DNA of 60,762 nt, counting the filler, from Dimorphilus gyrociliatus (Eukaryota > Animalia > Annelida): NCBI GenBank assembly GCA_904063045.1. It is 4 parts of 4 records of this genome, joined end to end, with 100 filler letters (N's around TTAATTAATTAA, not from the genome) between each part and the next. Parts side by side here need not be neighbours in the genome. Positions count along the whole stretch, not along the records: positions 41,604 to 52,578 come from CAJFCJ010000269.1; 3 more parts are not named here. The stretch is one strand, 5' to 3'. The position numbers and the translations under genes are program-made. This document shows positions 3,834 through 52,578 of the stretch, piece by piece; the stretch's first letter is position 1; the number at the start of each line of letters is the position of its first letter. Under the pieces are notes generated by a model that saw nothing but the letters and a program-made list of their open reading frames with translations, had not been told where the DNA came from and did no database searches.

Positions 3834-6800
3834 TTACCCTCTAAGTTGAGACTTTTTCTTTGTATTTGTAATTAAATTTGAAAGTTTATTAATGAGAAAA
3901 GCCCAAGGATTGAGAAACGAGTTTATTGGCATGAAAATAATGATAATTAAAGTATAAATATCATTATTGATATTTATGTGTACCATAAATGATAATAGGC
4001 CTAAAATTGAGAATGGCATCCAGCATAATAAATTTGTTAGTACAATGATAATAACTGATTTAGACAAATTTCTCTTTGACGTATTCTCATTGGAAATTTT
4101 TATGAGTGTTTTCCTTGAGTTTTTTATAATAAAGAATATATGAATATAGCAGACAACAACTATAATATAAATGATAAAAAGAAGAATATTGAATATAATA
4201 AATGATATGAACCATCCATCTTCCCGTTCATTTCTAATATAGAGATTAAAGCATATAGACGTTTTAGCAAAGTAATTCTAATGAAAATGTTTTTAGGTTA
4301 GGCTTTTATTTCTTATTGACCTAATTACCGGATAAAATAGTGAAGGTACAATTGATATTATAAATGCTGTAATAATTATGAATATTAAAAAGTATATCTT
4401 CTTTTGCTTTAGGATTGTTAATCCGAAATTTTTGAGTACAAACAATCTTTCGAATGTTAAAAATAGAATGCTCACTGATGACATAAATAATCCGTAAGTC
4501 AGTAAATTTCCCAATAGTGTACACAGAGCGCTAAATCTCCAATTCTGTTCGTTATGGAGATAATCATCGCGATAATACAAATCAGTAGATACAATTGTTA
4601 AAAGATATATAGACGTTAAAAAATCACCAGCGGTTAACGTCAACTGGTAAGAGACGTAAGATTTCCGTTGAATATTTTGGAAAAAACTGGCAAAAGCTAT
4701 TGAATTGCCAAAAAAACCGCTTATGCCATAAAACCAAAATAATACTCTTATCAAATTATTCTGTAATAAGTTTGTACATGTTTGAATTCGAGATGGAATT
4801 GGCAAACATATTATATTTTCACTAATAAAATTCCATACTAAACAGCAGAAATTATAGTGTAAACTGAATAATTTTCTTAAATTACTTAAACTTTTAGTTA
4901 TCATGTGTTCAGAATTTATTAGTATTTCAGTATTGTTCAAGTGTAATTCTGTCAATTTTGACAATTGATTCATAAAATTCTTATCAACTGCTTTAATTCT
5001 GCAATTTGTTATTTTTAATATTTTTAACTCTTGTAATTTTTGTTTTATATCAAAATTTAAAGTTGATATCTTAGTATCAGAAATATCTAGATAATACAAC
5101 ATCCCAGCTTGAAATGATAGTAAAAATTCCATATTTTCAACTGGATTAAAAGAAATATCAATATACTGCAATAATTTTGGTTTAATTTCCAATTCATTAA
5201 GAAATTTTGAAATATTGTTTTTTTTTAAAACTGCAAATATTAAATTTGGAAAATATTGAAATGAAAATGTTGAAAAATTATTGTTTTCCATAATTAGAAT
5301 ATGCAAATTAGTTGAAATGTTATTAATAATCTCTATTTGGAATCTTCCAACTATGGATAATTTTTTGATATGTTCGAATAATAGAATATTATTGGTAGAA
5401 TGATAATTGTTTTTCCAGTGTTTGTTGTTGCAAACTAGATTGAATAGATTCATTTCCGTACAGAAGTTCGTTACAGTGATATTACCGATGCACAGTTGTT
5501 CGTCACTACCGAGGTAACAATCGACAATATTATTACACACCTTTTCCAATGGGATATAATGTTTTCCTTTTCTGCATTTGAAGAAACCTTGCGGCTGGAA
5601 AGTTTCTATGAAAAATTAAAAATATAACCTTGACATTTTTTTAAAGATGATAAAAGGCAAGAAGAAGACAGAAAATGTCTTATTCTAGGGAAAATTTTAG
5701 GTAAGGACTAGCTAAGGTTATGTTAGGGTTAGGGTTTAGGTAAAGTCATTAAATTCGTCCCCACTCATTCTAAAAAATAAACAGTTACTTACCATCGCAA
5801 AAATGTTCATCGTCACCGTAAAGACAATGGTTGATACCATCGCAGAATTGTTCAATTGATACGCAAAAATTATTCACAGAACAAAGATATTCTCCGGGAT
5901 TACAGGCAGCCTTTTTACAATCTGTCAATTCTTTGAATGGAGAATGCGGTCTAGTCTTCATATATCCCATTGAGTCATACTCTATTCTACAGTAGGTTTT
6001 CGATTGAGCGTTATTACAAGCAGTTTTAAAAAGGTTGCCGTAAGAGGCTTGGCATGTTAACCATCCCTCGTCAATTTTAGTTTGGCAGTCATATCTCAAA
6101 TTACACAAACTGCTTAAAGGCAATAATTTCCCTTCACAAACTAGTCTGTCATTTCCTAATAAAAAAAAAATATGATAACTAAAAAACAAAATGTTTGTCA
6201 AGATTCCATTCTAACCAACATAATTATTTTGTATTTTAGCGTACAAATAATCCTCATCACTTCCATCAAAGCAATTTATTTCACTATCTCCAAACTGATT
6301 CAAATTGATGCACTGTCCATTTGAGCAATGTCTAAAAAATATTTAAATGTTTCATTTGAGTTTTTTTTTAGGTTCAAACTCTGATTAAATCAATCACCGA
6401 AAATCTTTTGAGCAATTCTTTAATTCTGAAATAGTAACGCAAACTTTTTTCTTACCAGTTTTTTTTTTTTTTTTTGTTCAATTAAAACTTATACCGCAAA
6501 ACATTTCATCAGATCCATCGGGACAGTTGGTGATAAAGTCGCAAACGAATCTATAATTAACGGTACTAGTTGAATTAAAGCATATAAACGAATAGGAAGA
6601 GTCTTCTTCGCAGTTGGTTTCATCTTCTCCAAATGGACAATCGGATAATCCATCACAAACGTAGAGATAAGAAACGCATATTATAGAACTTTTACAAAGA
6701 AATGAATTTTTTGGACATTTGAATTCGTCATTTGATTTCAAGGTAAATGAATTATGAATAATTAATTTATTTTCCTCTAATTCTATACAAAACAAGGAAA

Positions 6801-41603: not shown

Positions 41604-41830
41604 TTTTTAATGGTGTCCCTCCCCATTCTCCAGGTGTAGCCATTATTGATTCTAATGAGATCTTTGAACTGTGAGATAGCCATTTTGGGATCTTTGCAGT
41701 TTCTCATATATCTAGTTAGCTGGCTCATTAGGATACCTCTGAATGGTGTGTGTGGATGATTGGATTTGGTGGTGTAGCAGTATTCTGGAGTCAGTAGCCT
41801 TAAAATGGGTTTCCCAGGAAAGAGAGTTCC

Positions 41831-43153
41831 CTAGTATATGTAGGTCCAAGTCCAGAAAAGTACTTGATTTAGGGTTCTGGACCAAGTGAGCTTGATATCT
41901 GGATTTCTGTTGTTTAGTCTTGTCTTGAACTCCATGATGTCCCTGTCTGGTTTAGTGACCAAAATGATATCATCAATGTACCTGCCATAGTACTCAATGT
42001 CCTCTGTAAAATCTGTGACCAATTCGTGTTCCCAGGTGTGTAACACTATGTTTGCATATGCTGGACTAAATGGAGCTCCCATAGCTGTGCCCTTTATTTG
42101 CAGGAACCTGTGGTTCCCAAAGGTGAAATCATTGTTGTTGAGACAAATCCAAAGGAGTTCCAAGATTAGTTCATCAGGTCTACCTTCATGGTAGTGGGTT
42201 AACATGAACTCTTTAACAGCTTTTATGCCCCATTGAGGGTTAATGCTTGGGTATAGAGCTTCTACATCTGCTGTGAAGATCCCTCTGTTTTGCCAATTAT
42301 GTATCATAGATAGTTTGCCAATGCAATGTTGGGTGTTTTTAACATAGCTAGTGGTACTTTTTGCCATTTTGACCAGATAGTGATCAACAAATTTAGATAT
42401 TTTATATAGATCAGAGCCTACATAGCTCACCACTGGTCTCCCCTTGGGGATCCTATATGGTACTCTCCATTGGGAGCTGTGTTTATGAATTTTAGGTAGG
42501 AGGTAAAACTTTCTATCTCCTGGGCTATTCTGTGGAGCCATCAGAGTTGCTGTAGATTTGGTAATAATTTTCATTGTAACCAATTCATTAAGGATTTCAT
42601 TTAACCGGGTCCATTGGGTAGAGCTTATTTTATTGCTGACCTGTTTGTAGGTTGTTCTGTCACAGAGCTGTGTCATGGCTTCAAAGACATAGTCCTCTTT
42701 GTCCATTAAGACAATCCTTCTTCCTTTATCAGCTGGTTTAATGATAATGTTAGGATGATTGTTGAGGAAGTTTTTCATTAGGCCTTGATTTTCAAAACCC
42801 TTCTGGGCTCTATTAATTTTTTCAGAGCCCTTTATAATGTCATATATCCTGTCTGTGATATGGTTAATTTCTGGAATATGACTAGAGGGCATGTAATTTA
42901 ACTCCCTCATTAGTTCAGGTAGAGATGGTGCTTGTATGTCAAGAAGTTTTTTCTTTAGTGGATTATTTCGAAATCTTGGTGTACCATTTTTCTCAATGAT
43001 CTTTAGCCATTTTAATGTATAATCCAAGATCCCTGTGAAGTGCAAGTTTATAAATTTATTTGGGGCCCAAGTCCAGGCAAAGCCTAGACCTTGTGCCATA
43101 GTGTTCAGGCAAGAACTCTTGATGTTAGAGTTCCTACATAGGTTAAAAACCAT
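41831..43153 (-). CDS. PLE ORF2 (RT) copy 1, frameshifted at about 41878 and truncated by the gap
   Basis: Nearly identical to the first ~430 aa of the 758-aa ORF (one substitution). One-base loss in gggttctgg(g)acc near the contig end. Confidence 0.85.
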   Translation of the reverse strand: MVFNLCRNSNIKSSCLNTMAQGLGFAWTWAPNKFINLHFTGILDYTLKWLKIIEKNGTPRFRNNPLKKKLLDIQAPSLPELMRELNYMPSSHIPEINHITDRIYDIIKGSEKINRAQKGFENQGLMKNFLNNHPNIIIKPADKGRRIVLMDKEDYVFEAMTQLCDRTTYKQVSNKISSTQWTRLNEILNELVTMKIITKSTATLMAPQNSPGDRKFYLLPKIHKHSSQWRVPYRIPKGRPVVSYVGSDLYKISKFVDHYLVKMAKSTTSYVKNTQHCIGKLSMIHNWQNRGIFTADVEALYPSINPQWGIKAVKEFMLTHYHEGRPDELILELLWICLNNNDFTFGNHRFLQIKGTAMGAPFSPAYANIVLHTWEHELVTDFTEDIEYYGRYIDDIILVTKPDRDIMEFKTRLNNRNPDIKLTWSRTLNQVLFWTWTYIY

Positions 43154-43224
43154 ACTTGGTTCTGTTTTATTGATAAAAACATGTTTAAAAACATTATAAT
43201 TGTTATGCTGTTGTGCTTGAAGAG

Positions 43225-44007
43225 TTAGGAGTTTCCCTGGTCCATAGTCTCCTCATCAGCACTCATTTTCTCTGTAATTCCTTTAAATAAGACAGTCATG
43301 ATTGCCAATTCCTTTCTTAGTTCTGAGATTTCATCCTTAGAGTTCTTGTAAGGTTCTTTGTGTCTGGTTTTGTCTGCTGGTTTCTTGGATCTCTGTATGG
43401 TAGGGAGCTCTTTGAAATTTTCATGGAGCTCTCTATTGAAAGAGTCATCTAAGGGAGCTTTTAGATTTTTGGTAACCAAGTATACACTTTCTTTAAGTTG
43501 GGCCCAATTAATCTTTTTGCCATATTTTTGTATCGATCTGGTTTTGGCTACTTCAATAGCTTTCTTAACCTCTGATTGATTGTAATTTTGCTGATCATTT
43601 TTTATCTTGTCCCTCATTTTAGAGAGCCTCTCATTGAGCTCCTCCAGCACCACTCTATTTGTTTCTCTAGCACAAGTATTGGCTATTTCATGTAGTTGGT
43701 TGAGTCTTTCCCCAGTGATGGGACCTCCTGTGATTCTAATTGAGTCCATCATATCCATGGCCTTTTTGGTCCAAGGGTTATATTCCTTAAGTCTCTCAAT
43801 CTGGTGAATAGAACTGTAAGTTTTACTCATAGCTCTAGTCAGGGCTTTTTCCTTGTCACTTAGAGAACCTTTAAAACCATTTGCATCAGGTGCAGTCTGG
43901 CTCTTTGTGACTTGTACCCATCTGGGTTTGTCTGGAGCTCTGGAGTAGGGTGTCTTTCTTCCTGTTTTTTTTGTTCTTCTAGGAGCTTGGTTTTGTTTAG
44001 GGTCCAT
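43225..44007 (-). CDS. PLE ORF1, basic coiled-coil protein (260 aa from first ATG), copy 1
   Basis: Identical in three copies. The first ATG gives MDPKQ. K/R-rich N-terminus and heptad-like ELNERLSKMRDKIKN. Confidence 0.7.
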   Translation of the reverse strand: MDPKQNQAPRRTKKTGRKTPYSRAPDKPRWVQVTKSQTAPDANGFKGSLSDKEKALTRAMSKTYSSIHQIERLKEYNPWTKKAMDMMDSIRITGGPITGERLNQLHEIANTCARETNRVVLEELNERLSKMRDKIKNDQQNYNQSEVKKAIEVAKTRSIQKYGKKINWAQLKESVYLVTKNLKAPLDDSFNRELHENFKELPTIQRSKKPADKTRHKEPYKNSKDEISELRKELAIMTVLFKGITEKMSADEETMDQGNS

Positions 44008-44368
44008 TGCCAAAGTCTGTACTGGGTAGGTTAGGGTTTGGTAAGGGTTATGGGTTAGGCCACTCACACAACTCTGGTAATGTTTTTGGGAACTGGTTAG
44101 CTAGTGTTCCAGTGTAATACCTAACTTTTACTCAATGTTAGGTAGGGGTTCTCCTTGGTCAGGATTATAGATCTGGGCTCCCAGTCTTAGTCAGGTTTTG
44201 GGAACTGGTTAGTTGGTGTTCAAGGGTTCTACCAATTTTCCAATAGGTAGGAGTTCTCTATGTCTGAGCTCCTTGGTGCTTCAGTGCTCTGTCAAACTCT
44301 TAGTCTTATTCAATAACAATTAAATTTTTTCTTTTTCATCAACTTTTTATTTTAAACTTTAAAACATA

Positions 44369-44413
44369 TTACAACAATATTTCGCCTCTACTTGAGGCTT
44401 CATCAGGTTGTAA
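44369..44413 (-). ncRNA. Minimal type I hammerhead ribozyme
   Basis: Minus strand: TTACAAC-CTGATGA-A-GCCTC-AAGTA-GAGGC-GAAA-TAT-T-GTTGTAA. It has a 7-bp helix I, a 5-bp helix II, a conserved core and a palindromic ATAT helix III. Confidence 0.85.
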
Positions 44414-44526
44414 GTTAAACTGAACACCAACATAAGTATTTATACCATCACCACAAAAAAAAAAAAAAATTTTATATATAAAAAACATGAAAACAAGATG
44501 GCTGCCCTTGCACTAGCGCCACCTAA

Positions 44527-44718
44527 CTACATTTTTCTTTGTTTCTTTGAAGGTACTACTTCAAATTCATCACCTGATCTTTTGATTAGGAGTCTTTGTT
44601 GTATTCCAATATTGCTATTCTCTTTTGGAGTGCTTTCATATTGATACTCACCATCTTCCATATCATCATAGTTGTCATCATCTTCTTCCTCCTCAGTCTG
44701 TTCCTTGGTAGGGACCAT
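44527..44718 (-). CDS. Small acidic ORF (63 aa) with C-terminal NLS-like PSKKQRK, within the PLE unit
   Basis: ATG-initiated, identical at 48636-48827. Expression is unknown. Confidence 0.4.
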   Translation of the reverse strand: MVPTKEQTEEEEDDDNYDDMEDGEYQYESTPKENSNIGIQQRLLIKRSGDEFEVVPSKKQRKM

Positions 44719-44984
44719 TTCTTTGTCTGACTAAGTTGTAAGAACTGTTGAAGCTCACTTGAGCTCTTGGAGCTCTATTGAGTTCATGAGCTCTACTGAG
44801 CTCTTGGAGCTCTTGGAGCTCTACTGAGTTCTTGGAGCTCTACTGAGCTCTTCAAGGTCTCCTGTGGTATTGGAGCTCAACTGAGCTACTGTAGCTCCTT
44901 GGAGCTCTTGGACCTTATTGTAGCTAACTGTAGCTTTTGGAGTTCCTTGTAGCTTGTAGAGCTTGTTGTAGCTGCTGAAATTCA

Positions 44985-47261
44985 TTACAGTTCTTGGAGT
45001 TCACTTTGGCTTTTCTGGAGTAGAATTTTTTCTATGTGTTTTTCCATCATCTCATCAACCTTCTTATTGATAAGCCAGTGTCTGGTAGTAGTTGGGATCC
45101 TAAAGGCAGTTATTGACTTATACATTTGGAAGTGAGAGCTGTTAGGGGCTAGCTGGTGGATTGTTCTCTTGACTTTCTCAGCTATTAGTTGGGCTCCATT
45201 GTGTTGTGGTATGAGGAGTGGTACCATTTCCTTGGTGGTAAAACCTTCATGTTTATTAAGACCATGTGGGAACAGTGTATCCAAATGGTTGATGATTTCA
45301 GTTTCTTTTCTCATTAACCAAACTATTACTGAGCTCTCTGTGAGTTCCTTAGGAGCTACAGCAGCTATGTAGATCTTGAACTTCTTGATATCATGTGTTG
45401 CCATATGGTTATATAGTGGTCTATCTATCTTGTTTTTGAAGCCCAAATTATGGGTACCCCATCTACACTTGATAGTATCTGTAGTCATACCCACATATGC
45501 TAACCCACACATAGAGCATTGTAGGATATAGACACAACCCTTGGTGTTACAGTTAATGCTTTGGGTTAAGCTCCAAGAGTTGACCTGGTATAGGTCAAAT
45601 ACCTCATCTCTGGAGTCCAGTCTGAGGCAAGTATCACATCTAGTGTTACAACATTTATTGACTTTATACCTCAGTGCCTTTTTTTCTTCAGCTCTGGTGT
45701 TGAATTTTTTAATGGTGTCCCTCCCCATTCTCCAGGTGTAGCCATTGACTTTATTGATTCTAATGAGATCTTTGAACTGTGAGATAGCCATTTTGGGATC
45801 TTTGCAGTTTCTCATATATCTAGTTAGCTGGCTCATTAGGATACCTCTGAATGTGTGTGGTGGATGATTGGATTTGGTGTGTAGCAGTATTCTGGAGTCA
45901 GTAGCCTTAAAATGGGTTTCCCAGGAAAGAGAGTTCCCTAGTATATGTAGGTCCAAGTCCAGAAAAGTACTTGATTTAGGGTTCTGGGACCAAGTGAGCT
46001 TGATATCTGGATTTCTGTTGTTTAGTCTTGTCTGGAACTCCATGATGTCCCTGTCTGGTTTAGTGACCAAAATGATATCATCAATGTACCTGCCATAGTA
46101 CTCAATGTCCTCTGTAAAATCTGTGACCAATTCGTGTTCCCAGGTGTGTAACACTATGTTTGCATATGCTGGACTAAATGGAGCTCCCATAGCTGTGCCC
46201 TTTATTTGCAGGAACCTGTGGTTCCCAAAGGTGAAATCATTGTTGTTGAGACAAATCCAAAGGAGTTCCAAGATTAGTTCATCAGGTCTACCTTCATGGT
46301 AGTGGGTTAACATGAACTCTTTAACAGCTTTTATGCCCCATTGAGGGTTAATGCTTGGGTATAGAGCTTCTACATCTGCTGTGAAGATCCCTCTGTTTTG
46401 CCAATTATGTATCATAGATAGTTTGCCAATGCAATGTTGGGTGTTTTTAACATAGCTAGTGGTACTTTTTGCCATTTTGACCAGATAGTGATCAACAAAT
46501 TTAGATATTTTATATAGATCAGAGCCTACATAGCTCACCACTGGTCTCCCCTTGGGGATCCTATATGGTACTCTCCATTGGGAGCTGTGTTTATGAATTT
46601 TAGGTAGGAGGTAAAACTTTCTATCTCCTGGGCTATTCTGTGGAGCCATCAGAGTTGCTGTAGATTTGGTAATAATTTTCATTGTAACCAATTCATTAAG
46701 GATTTCATTTAACCGGGTCCATTGGGTAGAGCTTATTTTATTGCTGACCTGTTTGTAGGTTGTTCTGTCACAGAGCTGTGTCATGGCTTCAAAGACATAG
46801 TCCTCTTTGTCCATTAAGACAATCCTTCTTCCTTTATCAGCTGGTTTAATGATAATGTTAGGATGATTGTTGAGGAAGTTTTTCATTAGGCCTTGATTTT
46901 CAAAACCCTTCTGGGCTCTATTAATTTTTTCAGAGCCCTTTATAATGTCATATATCCTGTCTGTGATATGGTTAATTTCTGGAATATGACTAGAGGGCAT
47001 GTAATTTAACTCCCTCATTAGTTCAGGTAGAGATGGTGCTTGTATGTCAAGAAGTTTTTTCTTTAGTGGATTATTTCGAAATCTTGGTGTACCATTTTTC
47101 TCAATGATCTTTAGCCATTTTAATGTATAATCCAAGATCCCTGTGAAGTGCAAGTTTATAAATTTATTTGGGGCCCAAGTCCAGGCAAAGCCTAGACCTT
47201 GTGCCATAGTGTTCAGGCAAGAACTCTTGATGTTAGAGTTCCTACATAGGTTAAAAACCAT
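44985..47261 (-). CDS. PLE ORF2: intact reverse transcriptase - Cys linker - GIY-YIG endonuclease (758 aa)
   Basis: RT motifs TADVEALYPSI, GTAMGAPFSPAYANI, YIDD and FLDL. Linker CCNTRCDTC. Endonuclease GCVYILQCSMCGLAYVGMT..R..H..E..GLN. Confidence 0.96.
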   Translation of the reverse strand: MVFNLCRNSNIKSSCLNTMAQGLGFAWTWAPNKFINLHFTGILDYTLKWLKIIEKNGTPRFRNNPLKKKLLDIQAPSLPELMRELNYMPSSHIPEINHITDRIYDIIKGSEKINRAQKGFENQGLMKNFLNNHPNIIIKPADKGRRIVLMDKEDYVFEAMTQLCDRTTYKQVSNKISSTQWTRLNEILNELVTMKIITKSTATLMAPQNSPGDRKFYLLPKIHKHSSQWRVPYRIPKGRPVVSYVGSDLYKISKFVDHYLVKMAKSTTSYVKNTQHCIGKLSMIHNWQNRGIFTADVEALYPSINPQWGIKAVKEFMLTHYHEGRPDELILELLWICLNNNDFTFGNHRFLQIKGTAMGAPFSPAYANIVLHTWEHELVTDFTEDIEYYGRYIDDIILVTKPDRDIMEFQTRLNNRNPDIKLTWSQNPKSSTFLDLDLHILGNSLSWETHFKATDSRILLHTKSNHPPHTFRGILMSQLTRYMRNCKDPKMAISQFKDLIRINKVNGYTWRMGRDTIKKFNTRAEEKKALRYKVNKCCNTRCDTCLRLDSRDEVFDLYQVNSWSLTQSINCNTKGCVYILQCSMCGLAYVGMTTDTIKCRWGTHNLGFKNKIDRPLYNHMATHDIKKFKIYIAAVAPKELTESSVIVWLMRKETEIINHLDTLFPHGLNKHEGFTTKEMVPLLIPQHNGAQLIAEKVKRTIHQLAPNSSHFQMYKSITAFRIPTTTRHWLINKKVDEMMEKHIEKILLQKSQSELQEL

Positions 47262-47332
47262 ACTTGGTTCTGTTTTATTGATAAAAACATGTTTAAAAAC
47301 ATTATAATTGTTATGCTGTTGTGCTTGAAGAG

Positions 47333-48115
47333 TTAGGAGTTTCCCTGGTCCATAGTCTCCTCATCAGCACTCATTTTCTCTGTAATTCCTTTAAATAAGA
47401 CAGTCATGATTGCCAATTCCTTTCTTAGTTCTGAGATTTCATCCTTAGAGTTCTTGTAAGGTTCTTTGTGTCTGGTTTTGTCTGCTGGTTTCTTGGATCT
47501 CTGTATGGTAGGGAGCTCTTTGAAATTTTCATGGAGCTCTCTATTGAAAGAGTCATCTAAGGGAGCTTTTAGATTTTTGGTAACCAAGTATACACTTTCT
47601 TTAAGTTGGGCCCAATTAATCTTTTTGCCATATTTTTGTATCGATCTGGTTTTGGCTACTTCAATAGCTTTCTTAACCTCTGATTGATTGTAATTTTGCT
47701 GATCATTTTTTATCTTGTCCCTCATTTTAGAGAGCCTCTCATTGAGCTCCTCCAGCACCACTCTATTTGTTTCTCTAGCACAAGTATTGGCTATTTCATG
47801 TAGTTGGTTGAGTCTTTCCCCAGTGATGGGACCTCCTGTGATTCTAATTGAGTCCATCATATCCATGGCCTTTTTGGTCCAAGGGTTATATTCCTTAAGT
47901 CTCTCAATCTGGTGAATAGAACTGTAAGTTTTACTCATAGCTCTAGTCAGGGCTTTTTCCTTGTCACTTAGAGAACCTTTAAAACCATTTGCATCAGGTG
48001 CAGTCTGGCTCTTTGTGACTTGTACCCATCTGGGTTTGTCTGGAGCTCTGGAGTAGGGTGTCTTTCTTCCTGTTTTTTTTGTTCTTCTAGGAGCTTGGTT
48101 TTGTTTAGGGTCCAT
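47333..48115 (-). CDS. PLE ORF1 copy 2
   Basis: Same sequence as copy 1. ATG at 48115, stop 71 nt upstream of the ORF2 ATG, in a different frame. Confidence 0.7.
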   Translation of the reverse strand: MDPKQNQAPRRTKKTGRKTPYSRAPDKPRWVQVTKSQTAPDANGFKGSLSDKEKALTRAMSKTYSSIHQIERLKEYNPWTKKAMDMMDSIRITGGPITGERLNQLHEIANTCARETNRVVLEELNERLSKMRDKIKNDQQNYNQSEVKKAIEVAKTRSIQKYGKKINWAQLKESVYLVTKNLKAPLDDSFNRELHENFKELPTIQRSKKPADKTRHKEPYKNSKDEISELRKELAIMTVLFKGITEKMSADEETMDQGNS

Positions 48116-48476
48116 TGCCAAAGTCTGTACTGGGTAGGTTAGGGTTTGGTAAGGGTTATGGGTTAGGCCACTCACACAACTCTGGTAATGTTTTTGGGAA
48201 CTGGTTAGCTAGTGTTCCAGTGTAATACCTAACTTTTACTCAATGTTAGGTAGGGGTTCTCCTTGGTCAGGATTATAGATCTGGGCTCCCAGTCTTAGTC
48301 AGGTTTTGGGAACTGGTTAGTTGGTGTTCAAGGGTTCTACCAATTTTCCAATAGGTAGGAGTTCTCTATGTCTGAGCTCCTTGGTGCTTCAGTGCTCTGT
48401 CAAACTCTTAGTCTTATTCAATAACAATTAAATTTTTTCTTTTTCATCAACTTTTTATTTTAAACTTTAAAACATA

Positions 48477-48521
48477 TTACAACAATATTTCGCCTCTACT
48501 TGAGGCTTCATCAGGTTGTAA
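48477..48521 (-). ncRNA. Minimal type I hammerhead ribozyme, copy 2
   Basis: Identical to 44369-44413. Confidence 0.85.
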
Positions 48522-48635
48522 GTTAAACTGAACACCAACATAAGTATTTATACCATCACCACAAAAAAAAAAAAAAAATTTTATATATAAAAAACATGAA
48601 AACAAGATGGCTGCCCTTGCACTAGCGCCACCTAA

Positions 48636-48827
48636 CTACATTTTTCTTTGTTTCTTTGAAGGTACTACTTCAAATTCATCACCTGATCTTTTGATTAGGA
48701 GTCTTTGTTGTATTCCAATATTGCTATTCTCTTTTGGAGTGCTTTCATATTGATACTCACCATCTTCCATATCATCATAGTTGTCATCATCTTCTTCCTC
48801 CTCAGTCTGTTCCTTGGTAGGGACCAT
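48636..48827 (-). CDS. Small acidic ORF copy 2
   Basis: Identical to 44527-44718. Confidence 0.4.
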   Translation of the reverse strand: MVPTKEQTEEEEDDDNYDDMEDGEYQYESTPKENSNIGIQQRLLIKRSGDEFEVVPSKKQRKM

Positions 48828-49093
48828 TTCTTTGTCTGACTAAGTTGTAAGAACTGTTGAAGCTCACTTGAGCTCTTGGAGCTCTATTGAGTTCATGAGC
48901 TCTACTGAGCTCTTGGAGCTCTTGGAGCTCTACTGAGTTCTTGGAGCTCTACTGAGCTCTTCAAGGTCTCCTGTGGTATTGGAGCTCAACTGAGCTACTG
49001 TAGCTCCTTGGAGCTCTTGGACCTTATTGTAGCTAACTGTAGCTTTTGGAGTTCCTTGTAGCTTGTAGAGCTTGTTGTAGCTGCTGAAATTCA

Positions 49094-51370
49094 TTACAGT
49101 TCTTGGAGTTCACTTTGGCTTTTCTGGAGTAGAATTTTTTCTATGTGTTTTTCCATCATCTCATCAACCTTCTTATTGATAAGCCAGTGTCTGGTAGTAG
49201 TTGGGATCCTAAAGGCAGTTATTGACTTATACATTTGGAAGTGAGAGCTGTTAGGGGCTAGCTGGTGGATTGTTCTCTTGACTTTCTCAGCTATTAGTTG
49301 GGCTCCATTGTGTTGTGGTATGAGGAGTGGTACCATTTCCTTGGTGGTAAAACCTTCATGTTTATTAAGACCATGTGGGAACAGTGTATCCAAATGGTTG
49401 ATGATTTCAGTTTCTTTTCTCATTAACCAAACTATTACTGAGCTCTCTGTGAGTTCCTTAGGAGCTACAGCAGCTATGTAGATCTTGAACTTCTTGATAT
49501 CATGTGTTGCCATATGGTTATATAGTGGTCTATCTATCTTGTTTTTGAAGCCCAAATTATGGGTACCCCATCTACACTTGATAGTATCTGTAGTCATACC
49601 CACATATGCTAACCCACACATAGAGCATTGTAGGATATAGACACAACCCTTGGTGTTACAGTTAATGCTTTGGGTTAAGCTCCAAGAGTTGACCTGGTAT
49701 AGGTCAAATACCTCATCTCTGGAGTCCAGTCTGAGGCAAGTATCACATCTAGTGTTACAACATTTATTGACTTTATACCTCAGTGCCTTTTTTTCTTCAG
49801 CTCTGGTGTTGAATTTTTTAATGGTGTCCCTCCCCATTCTCCAGGTGTAGCCATTGACTTTATTGATTCTAATGAGATCTTTGAACTGTGAGATAGCCAT
49901 TTTGGGATCTTTGCAGTTTCTCATATATCTAGTTAGCTGGCTCATTAGGATACCTCTGAATGTGTGTGGTGGATGATTGGATTTGGTGTGTAGCAGTATT
50001 CTGGAGTCAGTAGCCTTAAAATGGGTTTCCCAGGAAAGAGAGTTCCCTAGTATATGTAGGTCCAAGTCCAGAAAAGTACTTGATTTAGGGTTCTGGGACC
50101 AAGTGAGCTTGATATCTGGATTTCTGTTGTTTAGTCTTGTCTGGAACTCCATGATGTCCCTGTCTGGTTTAGTGACCAAAATGATATCATCAATGTACCT
50201 GCCATAGTACTCAATGTCCTCTGTAAAATCTGTGACCAATTCGTGTTCCCAGGTGTGTAACACTATGTTTGCATATGCTGGACTAAATGGAGCTCCCATA
50301 GCTGTGCCCTTTATTTGCAGGAACCTGTGGTTCCCAAAGGTGAAATCATTGTTGTTGAGACAAATCCAAAGGAGTTCCAAGATTAGTTCATCAGGTCTAC
50401 CTTCATGGTAGTGGGTTAACATGAACTCTTTAACAGCTTTTATGCCCCATTGAGGGTTAATGCTTGGGTATAGAGCTTCTACATCTGCTGTGAAGATCCC
50501 TCTGTTTTGCCAATTATGTATCATAGATAGTTTGCCAATGCAATGTTGGGTGTTTTTAACATAGCTAGTGGTACTTTTTTGCCATTTTGACCAGATAGTG
50601 ATCAACAAATTTAGATATTTTATATAGATCAGAGCCTACATAGCTCACCACTGGTCTCCCCTTGGGGATCCTATATGGTACTCTCCATTGGGAGCTGTGT
50701 TTATGAATTTTAGGTAGGAGGTAAAACTTTCTATCTCCTGGGCTATTCTGTGGAGCCATCAGAGTTGCTGTAGATTTGGTAATAATTTTCATTGTAACCA
50801 ATTCATTAAGGATTTCATTTAACCGGGTCCATTGGGTAGAGCTTATTTTATTGCTGACCTGTTTGTAGGTTGTTCTGTCACAGAGCTGTGTCATGGCTTC
50901 AAAGACATAGTCCTCTTTGTCCATTAAGACAATCCTTCTTCCTTTATCAGCTGGTTTAATGATAATGTTAGGATGATTGTTGAGGAAGTTTTTCATTAGG
51001 CCTTGATTTTCAAAACCCTTCTGGGCTCTATTAATTTTTTCAGAGCCCTTTATAATGTCATATATCCTGTCTGTGATATGGTTAATTTCTGGAATATGAC
51101 TAGAGGGCATGTAATTTAACTCCCTCATTAGTTCAGGTAGAGATGGTGCTTGTATGTCAAGAAGTTTTTTCTTTAGTGGATTATTTCGAAATCTTGGTGT
51201 ACCATTTTTCTCAATGATCTTTAGCCATTTTAATGTATAATCCAAGATCCCTGTGAAGTGCAAGTTTATAAATTTATTTGGGGCCCAAGTCCAGGCAAAG
51301 CCTAGACCTTGTGCCATAGTGTTCAGGCAAGAACTCTTGATGTTAGAGTTCCTACATAGGTTAAAACCAT
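49094..51370 (-). CDS. PLE ORF2 copy 3, split by homopolymer indels
   Basis: Extra T in a T-run at about 50575-50580 and a missing A at about 51365. Otherwise identical to the 758-aa ORF. Confidence 0.88.
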
Positions 51371-51441
51371 ACTTGGTTCTGTTTTATTGATAAAAACATG
51401 TTTAAAAACATTATAATTGTTATGCTGTTGTGCTTGAAGAG

Positions 51442-52224
51442 TTAGGAGTTTCCCTGGTCCATAGTCTCCTCATCAGCACTCATTTTCTCTGTAATTCCTT
51501 TAAATAAGACAGTCATGATTGCCAATTCCTTTCTTAGTTCTGAGATTTCATCCTTAGAGTTCTTGTAAGGTTCTTTGTGTCTGGTTTTGTCTGCTGGTTT
51601 CTTGGATCTCTGTATGGTAGGGAGCTCTTTGAAATTTTCATGGAGCTCTCTATTGAAAGAGTCATCTAAGGGAGCTTTTAGATTTTTGGTAACCAAGTAT
51701 ACACTTTCTTTAAGTTGGGCCCAATTAATCTTTTTGCCATATTTTTGTATCGATCTGGTTTTGGCTACTTCAATAGCTTTCTTAACCTCTGATTGATTGT
51801 AATTTTGCTGATCATTTTTTATCTTGTCCCTCATTTTAGAGAGCCTCTCATTGAGCTCCTCCAGCACCACTCTATTTGTTTCTCTAGCACAAGTATTGGC
51901 TATTTCATGTAGTTGGTTGAGTCTTTCCCCAGTGATGGGACCTCCTGTGATTCTAATTGAGTCCATCATATCCATGGCCTTTTTGGTCCAAGGGTTATAT
52001 TCCTTAAGTCTCTCAATCTGGTGAATAGAACTGTAAGTTTTACTCATAGCTCTAGTCAGGGCTTTTTCCTTGTCACTTAGAGAACCTTTAAAACCATTTG
52101 CATCAGGTGCAGTCTGGCTCTTTGTGACTTGTACCCATCTGGGTTTGTCTGGAGCTCTGGAGTAGGGTGTCTTTCTTCCTGTTTTTTTTGTTCTTCTAGG
52201 AGCTTGGTTTTGTTTAGGGTCCAT
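51442..52224 (-). CDS. PLE ORF1 copy 3
   Basis: Identical protein. Confidence 0.7.
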   Translation of the reverse strand: MDPKQNQAPRRTKKTGRKTPYSRAPDKPRWVQVTKSQTAPDANGFKGSLSDKEKALTRAMSKTYSSIHQIERLKEYNPWTKKAMDMMDSIRITGGPITGERLNQLHEIANTCARETNRVVLEELNERLSKMRDKIKNDQQNYNQSEVKKAIEVAKTRSIQKYGKKINWAQLKESVYLVTKNLKAPLDDSFNRELHENFKELPTIQRSKKPADKTRHKEPYKNSKDEISELRKELAIMTVLFKGITEKMSADEETMDQGNS

Positions 52225-52578
52225 TGCCAAAGTCTGTACTGGGTAGGTTAGGGTTTGGTAAGGGTTATGGGTTAGGCCACTCACACAACTCTGGTAATGT
52301 TTTTGGGAACTGGTTAGCTAGTGTTCCAGTGTAATACCTAACTTTTACTCAATGTTAGGTAGGGGTTCTCCTTGGTCAGGATTATAGATCTGGGCTCCCA
52401 GTCTTAGTCAGGTTTTGGGAACTGGTTAGTTGGTGTTCAAGGGTTCTACCAATTTTCCAATAGGTAGGAGTTCTCTATGTCTGAGCTCCTTGGTGCTTCA
52501 GTGCTCTGTCAAACTCTTAGTCTTATTCAATAACAATTAAATTTTTCTTTTTCATCAACTTTTTATTTTAAACTTTAA

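Follow-up and report, generated by a model that had tools for sequence, protein, structure and literature searches.

How does a retroelement come to lie in full-length head-to-tail copies, and does a ribozyme at each junction account for the arrangement? The question is raised by a locus of the annelid Dimorphilus gyrociliatus (assembly GCA_904063045.1). The window that we analyzed is a stretch of 60,762 nucleotides (nt) made of four joined parts, and positions 41604 to 52578 of it (contig CAJFCJ010000269.1; here called the piece) consist of copies of a Penelope-like element (PLE) with a hammerhead ribozyme between successive copies. A sequence-only reading had taken such full concatemers to be unusual for PLEs and had suggested that self-cleaved, circularized RNA could regenerate them, a route then thought to be new for an autonomous element. 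We assign a probability of about 0.65 to a different answer, namely, that this is a young head-to-tail array of an autonomous D. gyrociliatus PLE with two open reading frames (ORFs), which arose by ordinary PLE behavior.

Array structure and encoded proteins

The piece comprises 10,975 nt without N's and is flanked by N's and artificial linkers. Direct repeats with a period of 4108 to 4110 nt span all of it, and the repeat analysis of the whole piece found no inverted repeats. Since every long ORF lies on the minus strand, we took this as the sense strand of the element, and we placed the unit borders at the predicted ribozyme cut. Defined in this way, the array consists of 2.67 head-to-tail units of 4108 to 4109 nt in a single minus-strand run (Table 1), matching the tandem or partial-tandem organization of PLEs. 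The period and the copy alignment both bear out the earlier description of near-identical units in a head-to-tail array. The count of "2.7 complete units" stands as a total only, as one unit is complete, one is nearly complete, and one is partial. Both ends of the piece fall inside units; the array boundary and its flank are therefore absent from these positions, and the limits of the pseudo-long terminal repeats (pLTRs) are undefined.

We next compared the copies. Units U2 and U3 match at 4093 positions; no substitution separates them, and each of their four indels is a 1-nt change in a homopolymer run. Between U2 and U1 there are one substitution and five indels (one of 6 nt), none of them farther than about 430 nt from the contig end. 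These differences are of the two kinds proposed previously, homopolymer indels and contig-end noise. ORF1 is intact in U1 (43225..44067), where ORF2 is truncated and the changes in the final ~430 nt look like errors. It is also intact in U3 (51442..52284), where two homopolymers (at 51366 and 50580) differ from those of U2 by one base each and break ORF2, which is consequently listed in two pieces (50565..51317 and 49094..50608).

Table 1. Positions of the array features, counted along the window
Feature	Position	Strand	Remarks
Unit U3	48484..52578	-	4095 nt; ~13 nt short at 5' end (piece edge)
Unit U2	44376..48483	-	4108 nt; sole complete ribozyme-to-ribozyme unit; ORF1 and ORF2 intact
Unit U1	41604..44375	-	2772 nt; 3' part lost at piece edge
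ORF1	47333..48175	-	280 amino acids (aa) from GTG; first ATG at 48115
ORF2	44985..47261	-	758 aa; reverse transcriptase (RT) and C-terminal GIY-YIG endonuclease (EN)
Hammerhead 1	44369..44413	-	Minimal type I; predicted cut after U17, between 44376 and 44375
Hammerhead 2	48477..48521	-	Identical to hammerhead 1; predicted cut between 48484 and 48483
Predicted ORF1 first coding exon	44652..44718	-	MVPTKEQTEEEEDDDNYDDMED plus 1 nt; donor G/GTGAGT between 44652 and 44651
Identical first-exon copy	48761..48827	-	Other junction
Predicted spliceosomal intron	44022..44651	-	630 nt; U2/U1 junction; GTGAGT...polypyrimidine-CAG
Predicted intron	48130..48760	-	631 nt; U3/U2 junction; holds second hammerhead
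Candidate -1 frameshift heptamer G_GGA_AAC	47339..47345	-	ORF1 frame; 6 nt before ORF1 stop (47335..47333)
Identical GGGAAAC sites	43231..43237 and 51448..51454	-	Other two units
Degenerate 19-nt tandem repeats	44748..44973	-	~71-80% matches; GAGCTCTTGGAGCTCTACT on the plus strand

The units encode the proteins expected of an autonomous PLE with more than one ORF, as the sequence-only reading had it. ORF2 matches the Pfam families RVT_1 (E = 8.8e-11) and GIY-YIG (E = 3.3e-6) and has 608 significant homologues of the RT plus GIY-YIG type. It carries a DKG motif (residues 142-144) N-terminal to the RT YIDD motif (392-395), a linker of the CX2-5CxxC type (CCNTRCDTC, 537-545), and, C-terminally, a GIY-YIG motif (575-591) with the embedded CCHH residues C582/C585/H604/H619. 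In an alignment with 14 homologues, the catalytic positions of the RT and the endonuclease, including DKG and YIDD, were invariant, and C582, C585, H604, H619, R600, E653, and N669 were all present in ORF2 and invariant as well. The combination of RT, GIY-YIG, CX2-5CxxC linker, and CCHH is described for canonical PLEs with a C-terminal EN of the Neptune/Nematis type (PMC8557442). ORF2 appears to belong to this type, whose linker and zinc-finger motifs its endonuclease has, the clade being assigned by motifs only. Its residues 19-240 are ~97% identical to the first 222 residues of the D. gyrociliatus gene model DgyrCDS14535, which diverges thereafter.

Over 265 aa, ORF1 matches D. gyrociliatus DgyrCDS14471 at every position (100% identity), and its only other relatives are 4 to 5 more gene models of the same species. 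These protein matches assign the contig to this annelid or to a very close relative, and not to human. It had no significant match to a Pfam family, the comparison with a protein atlas gave no lead, and no similarity was found to ORF1 of two related loci with tandem units, L041 and L043 (see below). By analogy alone, ORF1 may be a nucleic-acid-binding or chaperone-type protein. It is less than half as long as ORF1 of the related elements.

Ribozyme, predicted intron, and candidate frameshift site

Read in the sense direction, the hammerhead consists of UUACAAC, CUGAUGA, A, GCCUC, AAGUA, GAGGC, GAAA, UAU, U, and GUUGUAA. Helix I has 7 bp (UUACAAC/GUUGUAA) and is followed by the CUGAUGA core, an unpaired, bulged A, and a helix II of 5 bp (GCCUC/GAGGC) with the loop AAGUA. 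On the 3' side of helix II come GAAA, a stem III of which only the palindrome AUAU (A15.1 to U16.1) is left, and U17. The motif thus has the hammerhead core (CUGANGA...GAAA with helices I and II and a nucleotide other than G at position 17, here U) together with the very short palindromic stem III of minimal dimeric PLE hammerheads. Helices I and II were recovered in the minimum-free-energy fold of 71 nt. A descriptor scan of both strands of the piece found exactly two sites, both on the element strand and one per complete junction, and gave no match in 300 shuffles of 41604-52578. The scan returned the same predicted cut coordinates that had been proposed before, with one hammerhead per junction, placed after the ORF2 stop and before ORF1 within the repeat (pLTR) region, as in other PLEs. 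A third hammerhead would lie just past the end of the piece.

We surveyed 80 distantly related loci (29-40% protein identity), which gave independent support. A matching hammerhead architecture was found on the coding strand at 20 of them and on the opposite strand at none (0/80), and it likewise sits in the inter-ORF position. Stem III is a perfect palindrome of 4 to 8 nt (ACGU, AGCU, AUAU, ACCGGU, ACGCGU, AGCGCU, or AUAGCUAU) in 20 of the 21 motifs of relatives, a property that the descriptor does not demand. A palindromic stem III is the signature of PLE hammerheads that act as dimers (PMC4209133; Lunse et al. 2017 as presented in PMC6765202). Within a monomer, stem III would be a single base pair closing a 2-nt loop, so that two copies must pair; judging from established hammerhead knowledge, the ribozyme should act only as a dimer, through its AUAU palindrome. 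It shares with the described dimeric minimal hammerheads (Cervera & de la Pena 2014; Lunse, Weinberg & Breaker 2017) the type I topology, the CUGAUGA...GAAA core, the unpaired base 5' of a relatively long helix II, and the 4-nt palindromic stem III that implies dimer action. It differs from them in the length of helix I (7 bp) and in a stem III made of A-U pairs only, the weakest pairing possible, which also occurs in the related locus L076.

The junctions also hold what looks like an intron. Two annotated proteins, P0121 and P0125, start with MVPTKEQTEEEEDDDNYDDMED, which corresponds to residues 1-22 of a small acidic ORF (44718..44527), and continue with ORF1. P0121 implies an in-frame acceptor (CCCAG) at the equivalent of 48130/48129 in the next unit, while P0125 has the same first exon and an acceptor further downstream within ORF1. 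The GTGAGT donor and CAG acceptor of P0121 were found at every junction. The predicted first exon follows ORF2 in the unit, so that the annotated ORF1 start codon (44718) belongs to the preceding unit and is upstream of the ribozyme. Given this position, the expression unit would exceed one unit and straddle the ribozyme; with ORF1 split around the ribozyme, a linear monomer running from 48483 to 44376 would have the ORF1 first exon at its 3' end. Each predicted intron contains a run of 15 to 16 T's, the whole ribozyme, an AT-rich tract with AATAAA, and a TATAAAT box ~30 nt upstream of helix I (at 44444 in the U2/U1 intron). Such an intron would fit known PLE biology: the promoter is located in the pLTRs, which in some PLEs also contain an intron, and the Penelope intron abuts the ribozyme (PMC6765202, PMC4209133, PMC8557442). 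We regard the ribozyme-containing intron as a lead from the annotated gene models. The 19-nt repeats closely follow the ORF2 stop and precede the predicted first exon, with a copy in U3 at ~48857-49082; that they serve as a promoter or enhancer is a guess.

ORF1 and ORF2 are likely expressed as a fusion through -1 frameshifting. Starting at 47360 (unit position 1124), the ORF2 frame stays open and shares 25 nt, in the -1 frame, with the end of ORF1. The fusion agrees with a published remark that ORF1 of PLEs "can be separated by a frameshift" (PMC8557442, Fig. 1 legend). Among the relatives, the upstream ORF overlaps the RT ORF in the -1 frame at 47 loci, and 37 of these have a canonical slippery heptamer in the overlap, often within ~12 nt of the ORF1 stop; we estimate the chance expectation at a few per cent. 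Their heptamers are mostly UUUAAAC or AAAAAAC, with UUUUUUA and UUUAAAU also present. The frequency of such heptamers and the in-frame GGGAAAC of the array family are the reasons for considering the fusion likely.

Origin of the array

The reading that we favor, ordinary PLE behavior, would run as follows. The region from the ORF2 stop to the ORF1 body would play the part of a pLTR in the tandem, with the 19-nt repeats, the short first exon of ORF1, the ~630-nt intron with its TATA-like box, the ribozyme, and the AT-rich tract as its contents. Transcripts would run across the unit junction, and splicing would join the upstream exon to ORF1. The spliced RNA would yield ORF1 and, via the -1 frameshift at GGGAAAC, an ORF1-RT-EN fusion, while unspliced RNA would retain the ribozyme. 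The latter would be active only where two copies meet, on the multimeric or neighboring transcripts that a tandem supplies, and its cut would give U(44376) a 2',3'-cyclic phosphate and G(44375) a 5'-OH, the standard ends of hammerhead cleavage. The array itself may stem from target-primed reverse transcription of a longer-than-unit RNA, from insertion beside an existing copy, or from both, and may then have been expanded or homogenized by unequal exchange.

Published work and relatives of the element place this layout within what PLEs are known to do. PLEs have been described as repeats in tandem or in multiple copies, an arrangement required for their expression (PMC6765202), and full tandems or closed-cycle contigs occur in about a fifth of the 80 distant relatives. 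Locus L041 (1-9274) holds 1.86 units of 4995 nt and L043 (1-10652) holds 2.18 units of 4882 nt, and in each of the two, both ORFs occur twice; three further related loci have ~1.2 units. The view that full concatemers are unusual for PLEs is thus not upheld. Nor is the circular-RNA model new for an autonomous element: the path from self-cleavage through circular RNA and more-than-unit reverse transcription to head-to-tail PLEs was proposed for PLEs in 2014 (PMC4209133) and repeated in a 2019 review (PMC6765202). The array is a clean further example of a described PLE organization and not a new kind of element. As to the ribozymes of the two tandem loci, L041 has a hammerhead ~75 nt upstream of each ORF1, and the descriptor scan found none in L043.

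Several observations count against our account or parts of it. All differences between the copies resemble long-read consensus errors, and the near-identity may partly be an effect of polishing; with errors of this type only, the copies are indistinguishable, and their identity says little about age. The piece contains no flanking DNA, so that chromosomal anchoring and the true copy number are not shown by it. The gene models of the family disagree on the intron (P0123, P0124, and P0127 take another donor or an internal ATG), and those that imply it may have been predicted ab initio. The 106 nt downstream of the heptamer fold no better than shuffled sequences (z = -0.08), pseudoknots being outside the method. 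Rfam models gave no match at E ≤ 1 on the whole piece, and on a 121-nt excerpt, Hammerhead_3 reached 11.6 bits (E = 7) against a gathering score of 48.5. Because minimal PLE hammerheads also escaped earlier canonical descriptors (PMC4209133), this failure is to be expected; it weakens the formal call but not the structural reading. Finally, RNAcofold did not predict the intermolecular AUAU helix between two ribozyme copies, a result that is uninformative for a 4-bp A-U helix.

A role for circular RNA as the direct source of the array seems unlikely to us, although several features speak for it. According to this model, cleavage yields exact 4108-nt monomers, which are closed by an RtcB-type ligase of the host and copied more than once around by the RT, and the concatemeric cDNA integrates as an array. 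The junctions are perfectly uniform, and each restores an intact ribozyme with helix I across the junction. Ends with a 5'-OH and a 2',3'-cyclic phosphate are RtcB substrates, and RtcB efficiently circularizes animal retrozyme monomers in vitro (PMC7229834). A circle or multimer would also rejoin the first exon of ORF1 to its body, the model has a published precedent in PLEs as cited above, and many relatives assemble as full tandems or closed cycles. Uniform junctions, however, are equally expected from the copying of a multimeric linear transcript, from rolling reverse transcription of a circle, and from unequal exchange after tandem insertion. Mutating the ribozyme of Anolis PAc, the one PLE reconstituted in vitro, left its insertion there unchanged, and no RNA-seq reads ended at its cut (PMC11167929). 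Cleavage in vitro by PLE hammerheads, dimers included, is poor (PMC4209133), and tandems and pLTRs are also formed by PLE clades without canonical ribozymes (PMC8557442). Moreover, the ribozyme lies inside the predicted intron, and the linear monomer would split ORF1.

The closed cycles among the relatives deserve a separate remark. Ten related metagenomic contigs (L015, L030, L032, L033, L036, L048, L049, L054, L055, and L056) close on themselves through end-to-end overlaps of 91 to 127 nt (mostly 123 or 127), giving cycles of 4.9 to 6.5 kb. We rejected these contigs as decisive evidence for circles, since pLTR-flanked multi-copy elements also cycle in de Bruijn assemblies; they are compatible with tandems, circles, and pLTR-flanked copies.

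An assembly artefact is similarly improbable. Reads from loci with a pLTR on either side of the ORFs could have been chained through the terminal repeat, or a repeat contig could have been overextended. The contig is in fact short (11 kb) and made of repeat only, its ends are noisy, and the copy differences are of the error type only. The genome was assembled from PacBio RS II continuous long reads (CLR; 5-kb size selection) with PBcR and polished with Quiver and Pilon (PMC7854359), and small repeat contigs may well remain unplaced in such pipelines. Gene models of the family occur on at least five other D. gyrociliatus contigs (57, 144, 151, 283, and 305 kb). Two of these, however, carry two consecutive ORF1 gene models each (DgyrCDS14470/14471 on the 144-kb contig and DgyrCDS14951/14952 on the 57-kb contig), and the gene numbering suggests adjacent units in anchored sequence. 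The relatives with two full units come from independent assemblies, and reads of ~10 kb covering more than two units are plausible given the 5-kb size selection. A missed SMRTbell adapter in the PacBio reads was also considered and rejected, as it gives inverted repeats, whereas the piece has direct and no inverted repeats.

Residues 1-255 of P0123 (DgyrCDS14951) resemble the endonuclease end of a different PLE, with a linker-like motif (CMTNKCKLC), and the model fuses this part to the acidic exon and ORF1 of the array family. P0123 could be a neighboring PLE, a nested PLE, or a merged gene model.

A stronger version of the circular route strikes us as a long shot. In it, rolling reverse transcription of a circularized 4.1-kb, ribozyme-processed RNA gives rise to the array directly, and the gene order is permuted around the ribozyme (ORF1 start exon at the 3' end of the monomer, ORF1 body at the 5' end), with a circle or multimer obligatory for a translatable ORF1-ORF2. 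Least probable by far is an extrachromosomal circular DNA copy that was read or amplified as a concatemer: the pure tandem without flanks and the ten self-closing related contigs would fit it, but the word "amplification" has 0 occurrences in the D. gyrociliatus genome paper (PMC7854359), a 4.1-kb circle would be below the 5-kb size cutoff and 11-kb direct-repeat reads would need rolling-circle amplification, and family members are annotated on large contigs.

Relation to known elements and significance

The array family is close to PLEs of the Neptune/Nematis type (Arkhipova 2006; Craig et al. 2021, PMC8557442), which share the order of RT then GIY-YIG, the DKG, YIDD, CX2-5CxxC, and CCHH motifs, the hammerhead in the repeat region, the tandems, and an upstream ORF1 that a frameshift can set apart. 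Compared with its metagenomic relatives, the family has a shorter ORF1 (280-287 aa versus ~490-770 aa) without detectable similarity to theirs. Penelope of Drosophila virilis and Poseidon PAc of Anolis carolinensis also form tandem or partial-tandem loci. They have a promoter and an intron in the pLTR/5' region, where the array family has a predicted intron; near the intron they carry a minimal hammerhead with a small palindromic stem III, and they give multi-copy transcripts (PMC4209133, PMC11167929; PMC2377424 as cited in PMC8557442). Unlike the array family, both have a single ORF and lack the CX2-5CxxC linker. The Penelope intron ends at the 5' side of helix I and the PAc ORF begins inside the ribozyme, whereas the array family has the whole ribozyme within the predicted intron, the acceptor following ~350 nt downstream.

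Animal non-LTR retrozymes (PMC7229834; bioRxiv 10.64898/2026.07.22.740005) resemble the array in their head-to-tail DNA repeats with one type I hammerhead per unit. They produce unit-length RNA with RtcB-ligatable ends, are proposed to spread by rolling reverse transcription, and likely derive from PLE pLTRs (PMC7229834; bioRxiv 10.64898/2026.07.22.740005). Retrozymes are, however, small, non-coding, and non-autonomous units (170-400 nt) that have been demonstrated as circular RNAs. The 4.1-kb unit of the array (4108 nt) encodes ORF1 and its own RT-EN, falls outside that definition, and is known from sequence alone.

What the locus adds is a PLE family of D. gyrociliatus, its candidate frameshift site, and a ribozyme-containing predicted intron; the layout and the circular model were known. 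The text of the genome paper does not contain the word "Penelope" and does not name the PLE family; its authors report transposable element families with "very recent bursts" (PMC7854359). The function of hammerheads in PLEs "is still unclear" (PMC8557442), and that of PAc was dispensable in vitro (PMC11167929). The array family could be a convenient test case, as it looks young and intact, has few copies, and carries the ribozyme in a predicted intron. The host annelid can be cultured, its genome measures 74 Mb, and PacBio, RNA-seq, and ATAC data for it are publicly available (PMC7854359). The family would permit clean tests of the competition between cleavage and splicing, of unit-length or circular RNA of an autonomous PLE, and of the one-step formation of full-length tandems. 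If the stronger circular reading with its permuted gene order were true, circularization or the tandem layout would be obligatory for this element and not incidental.

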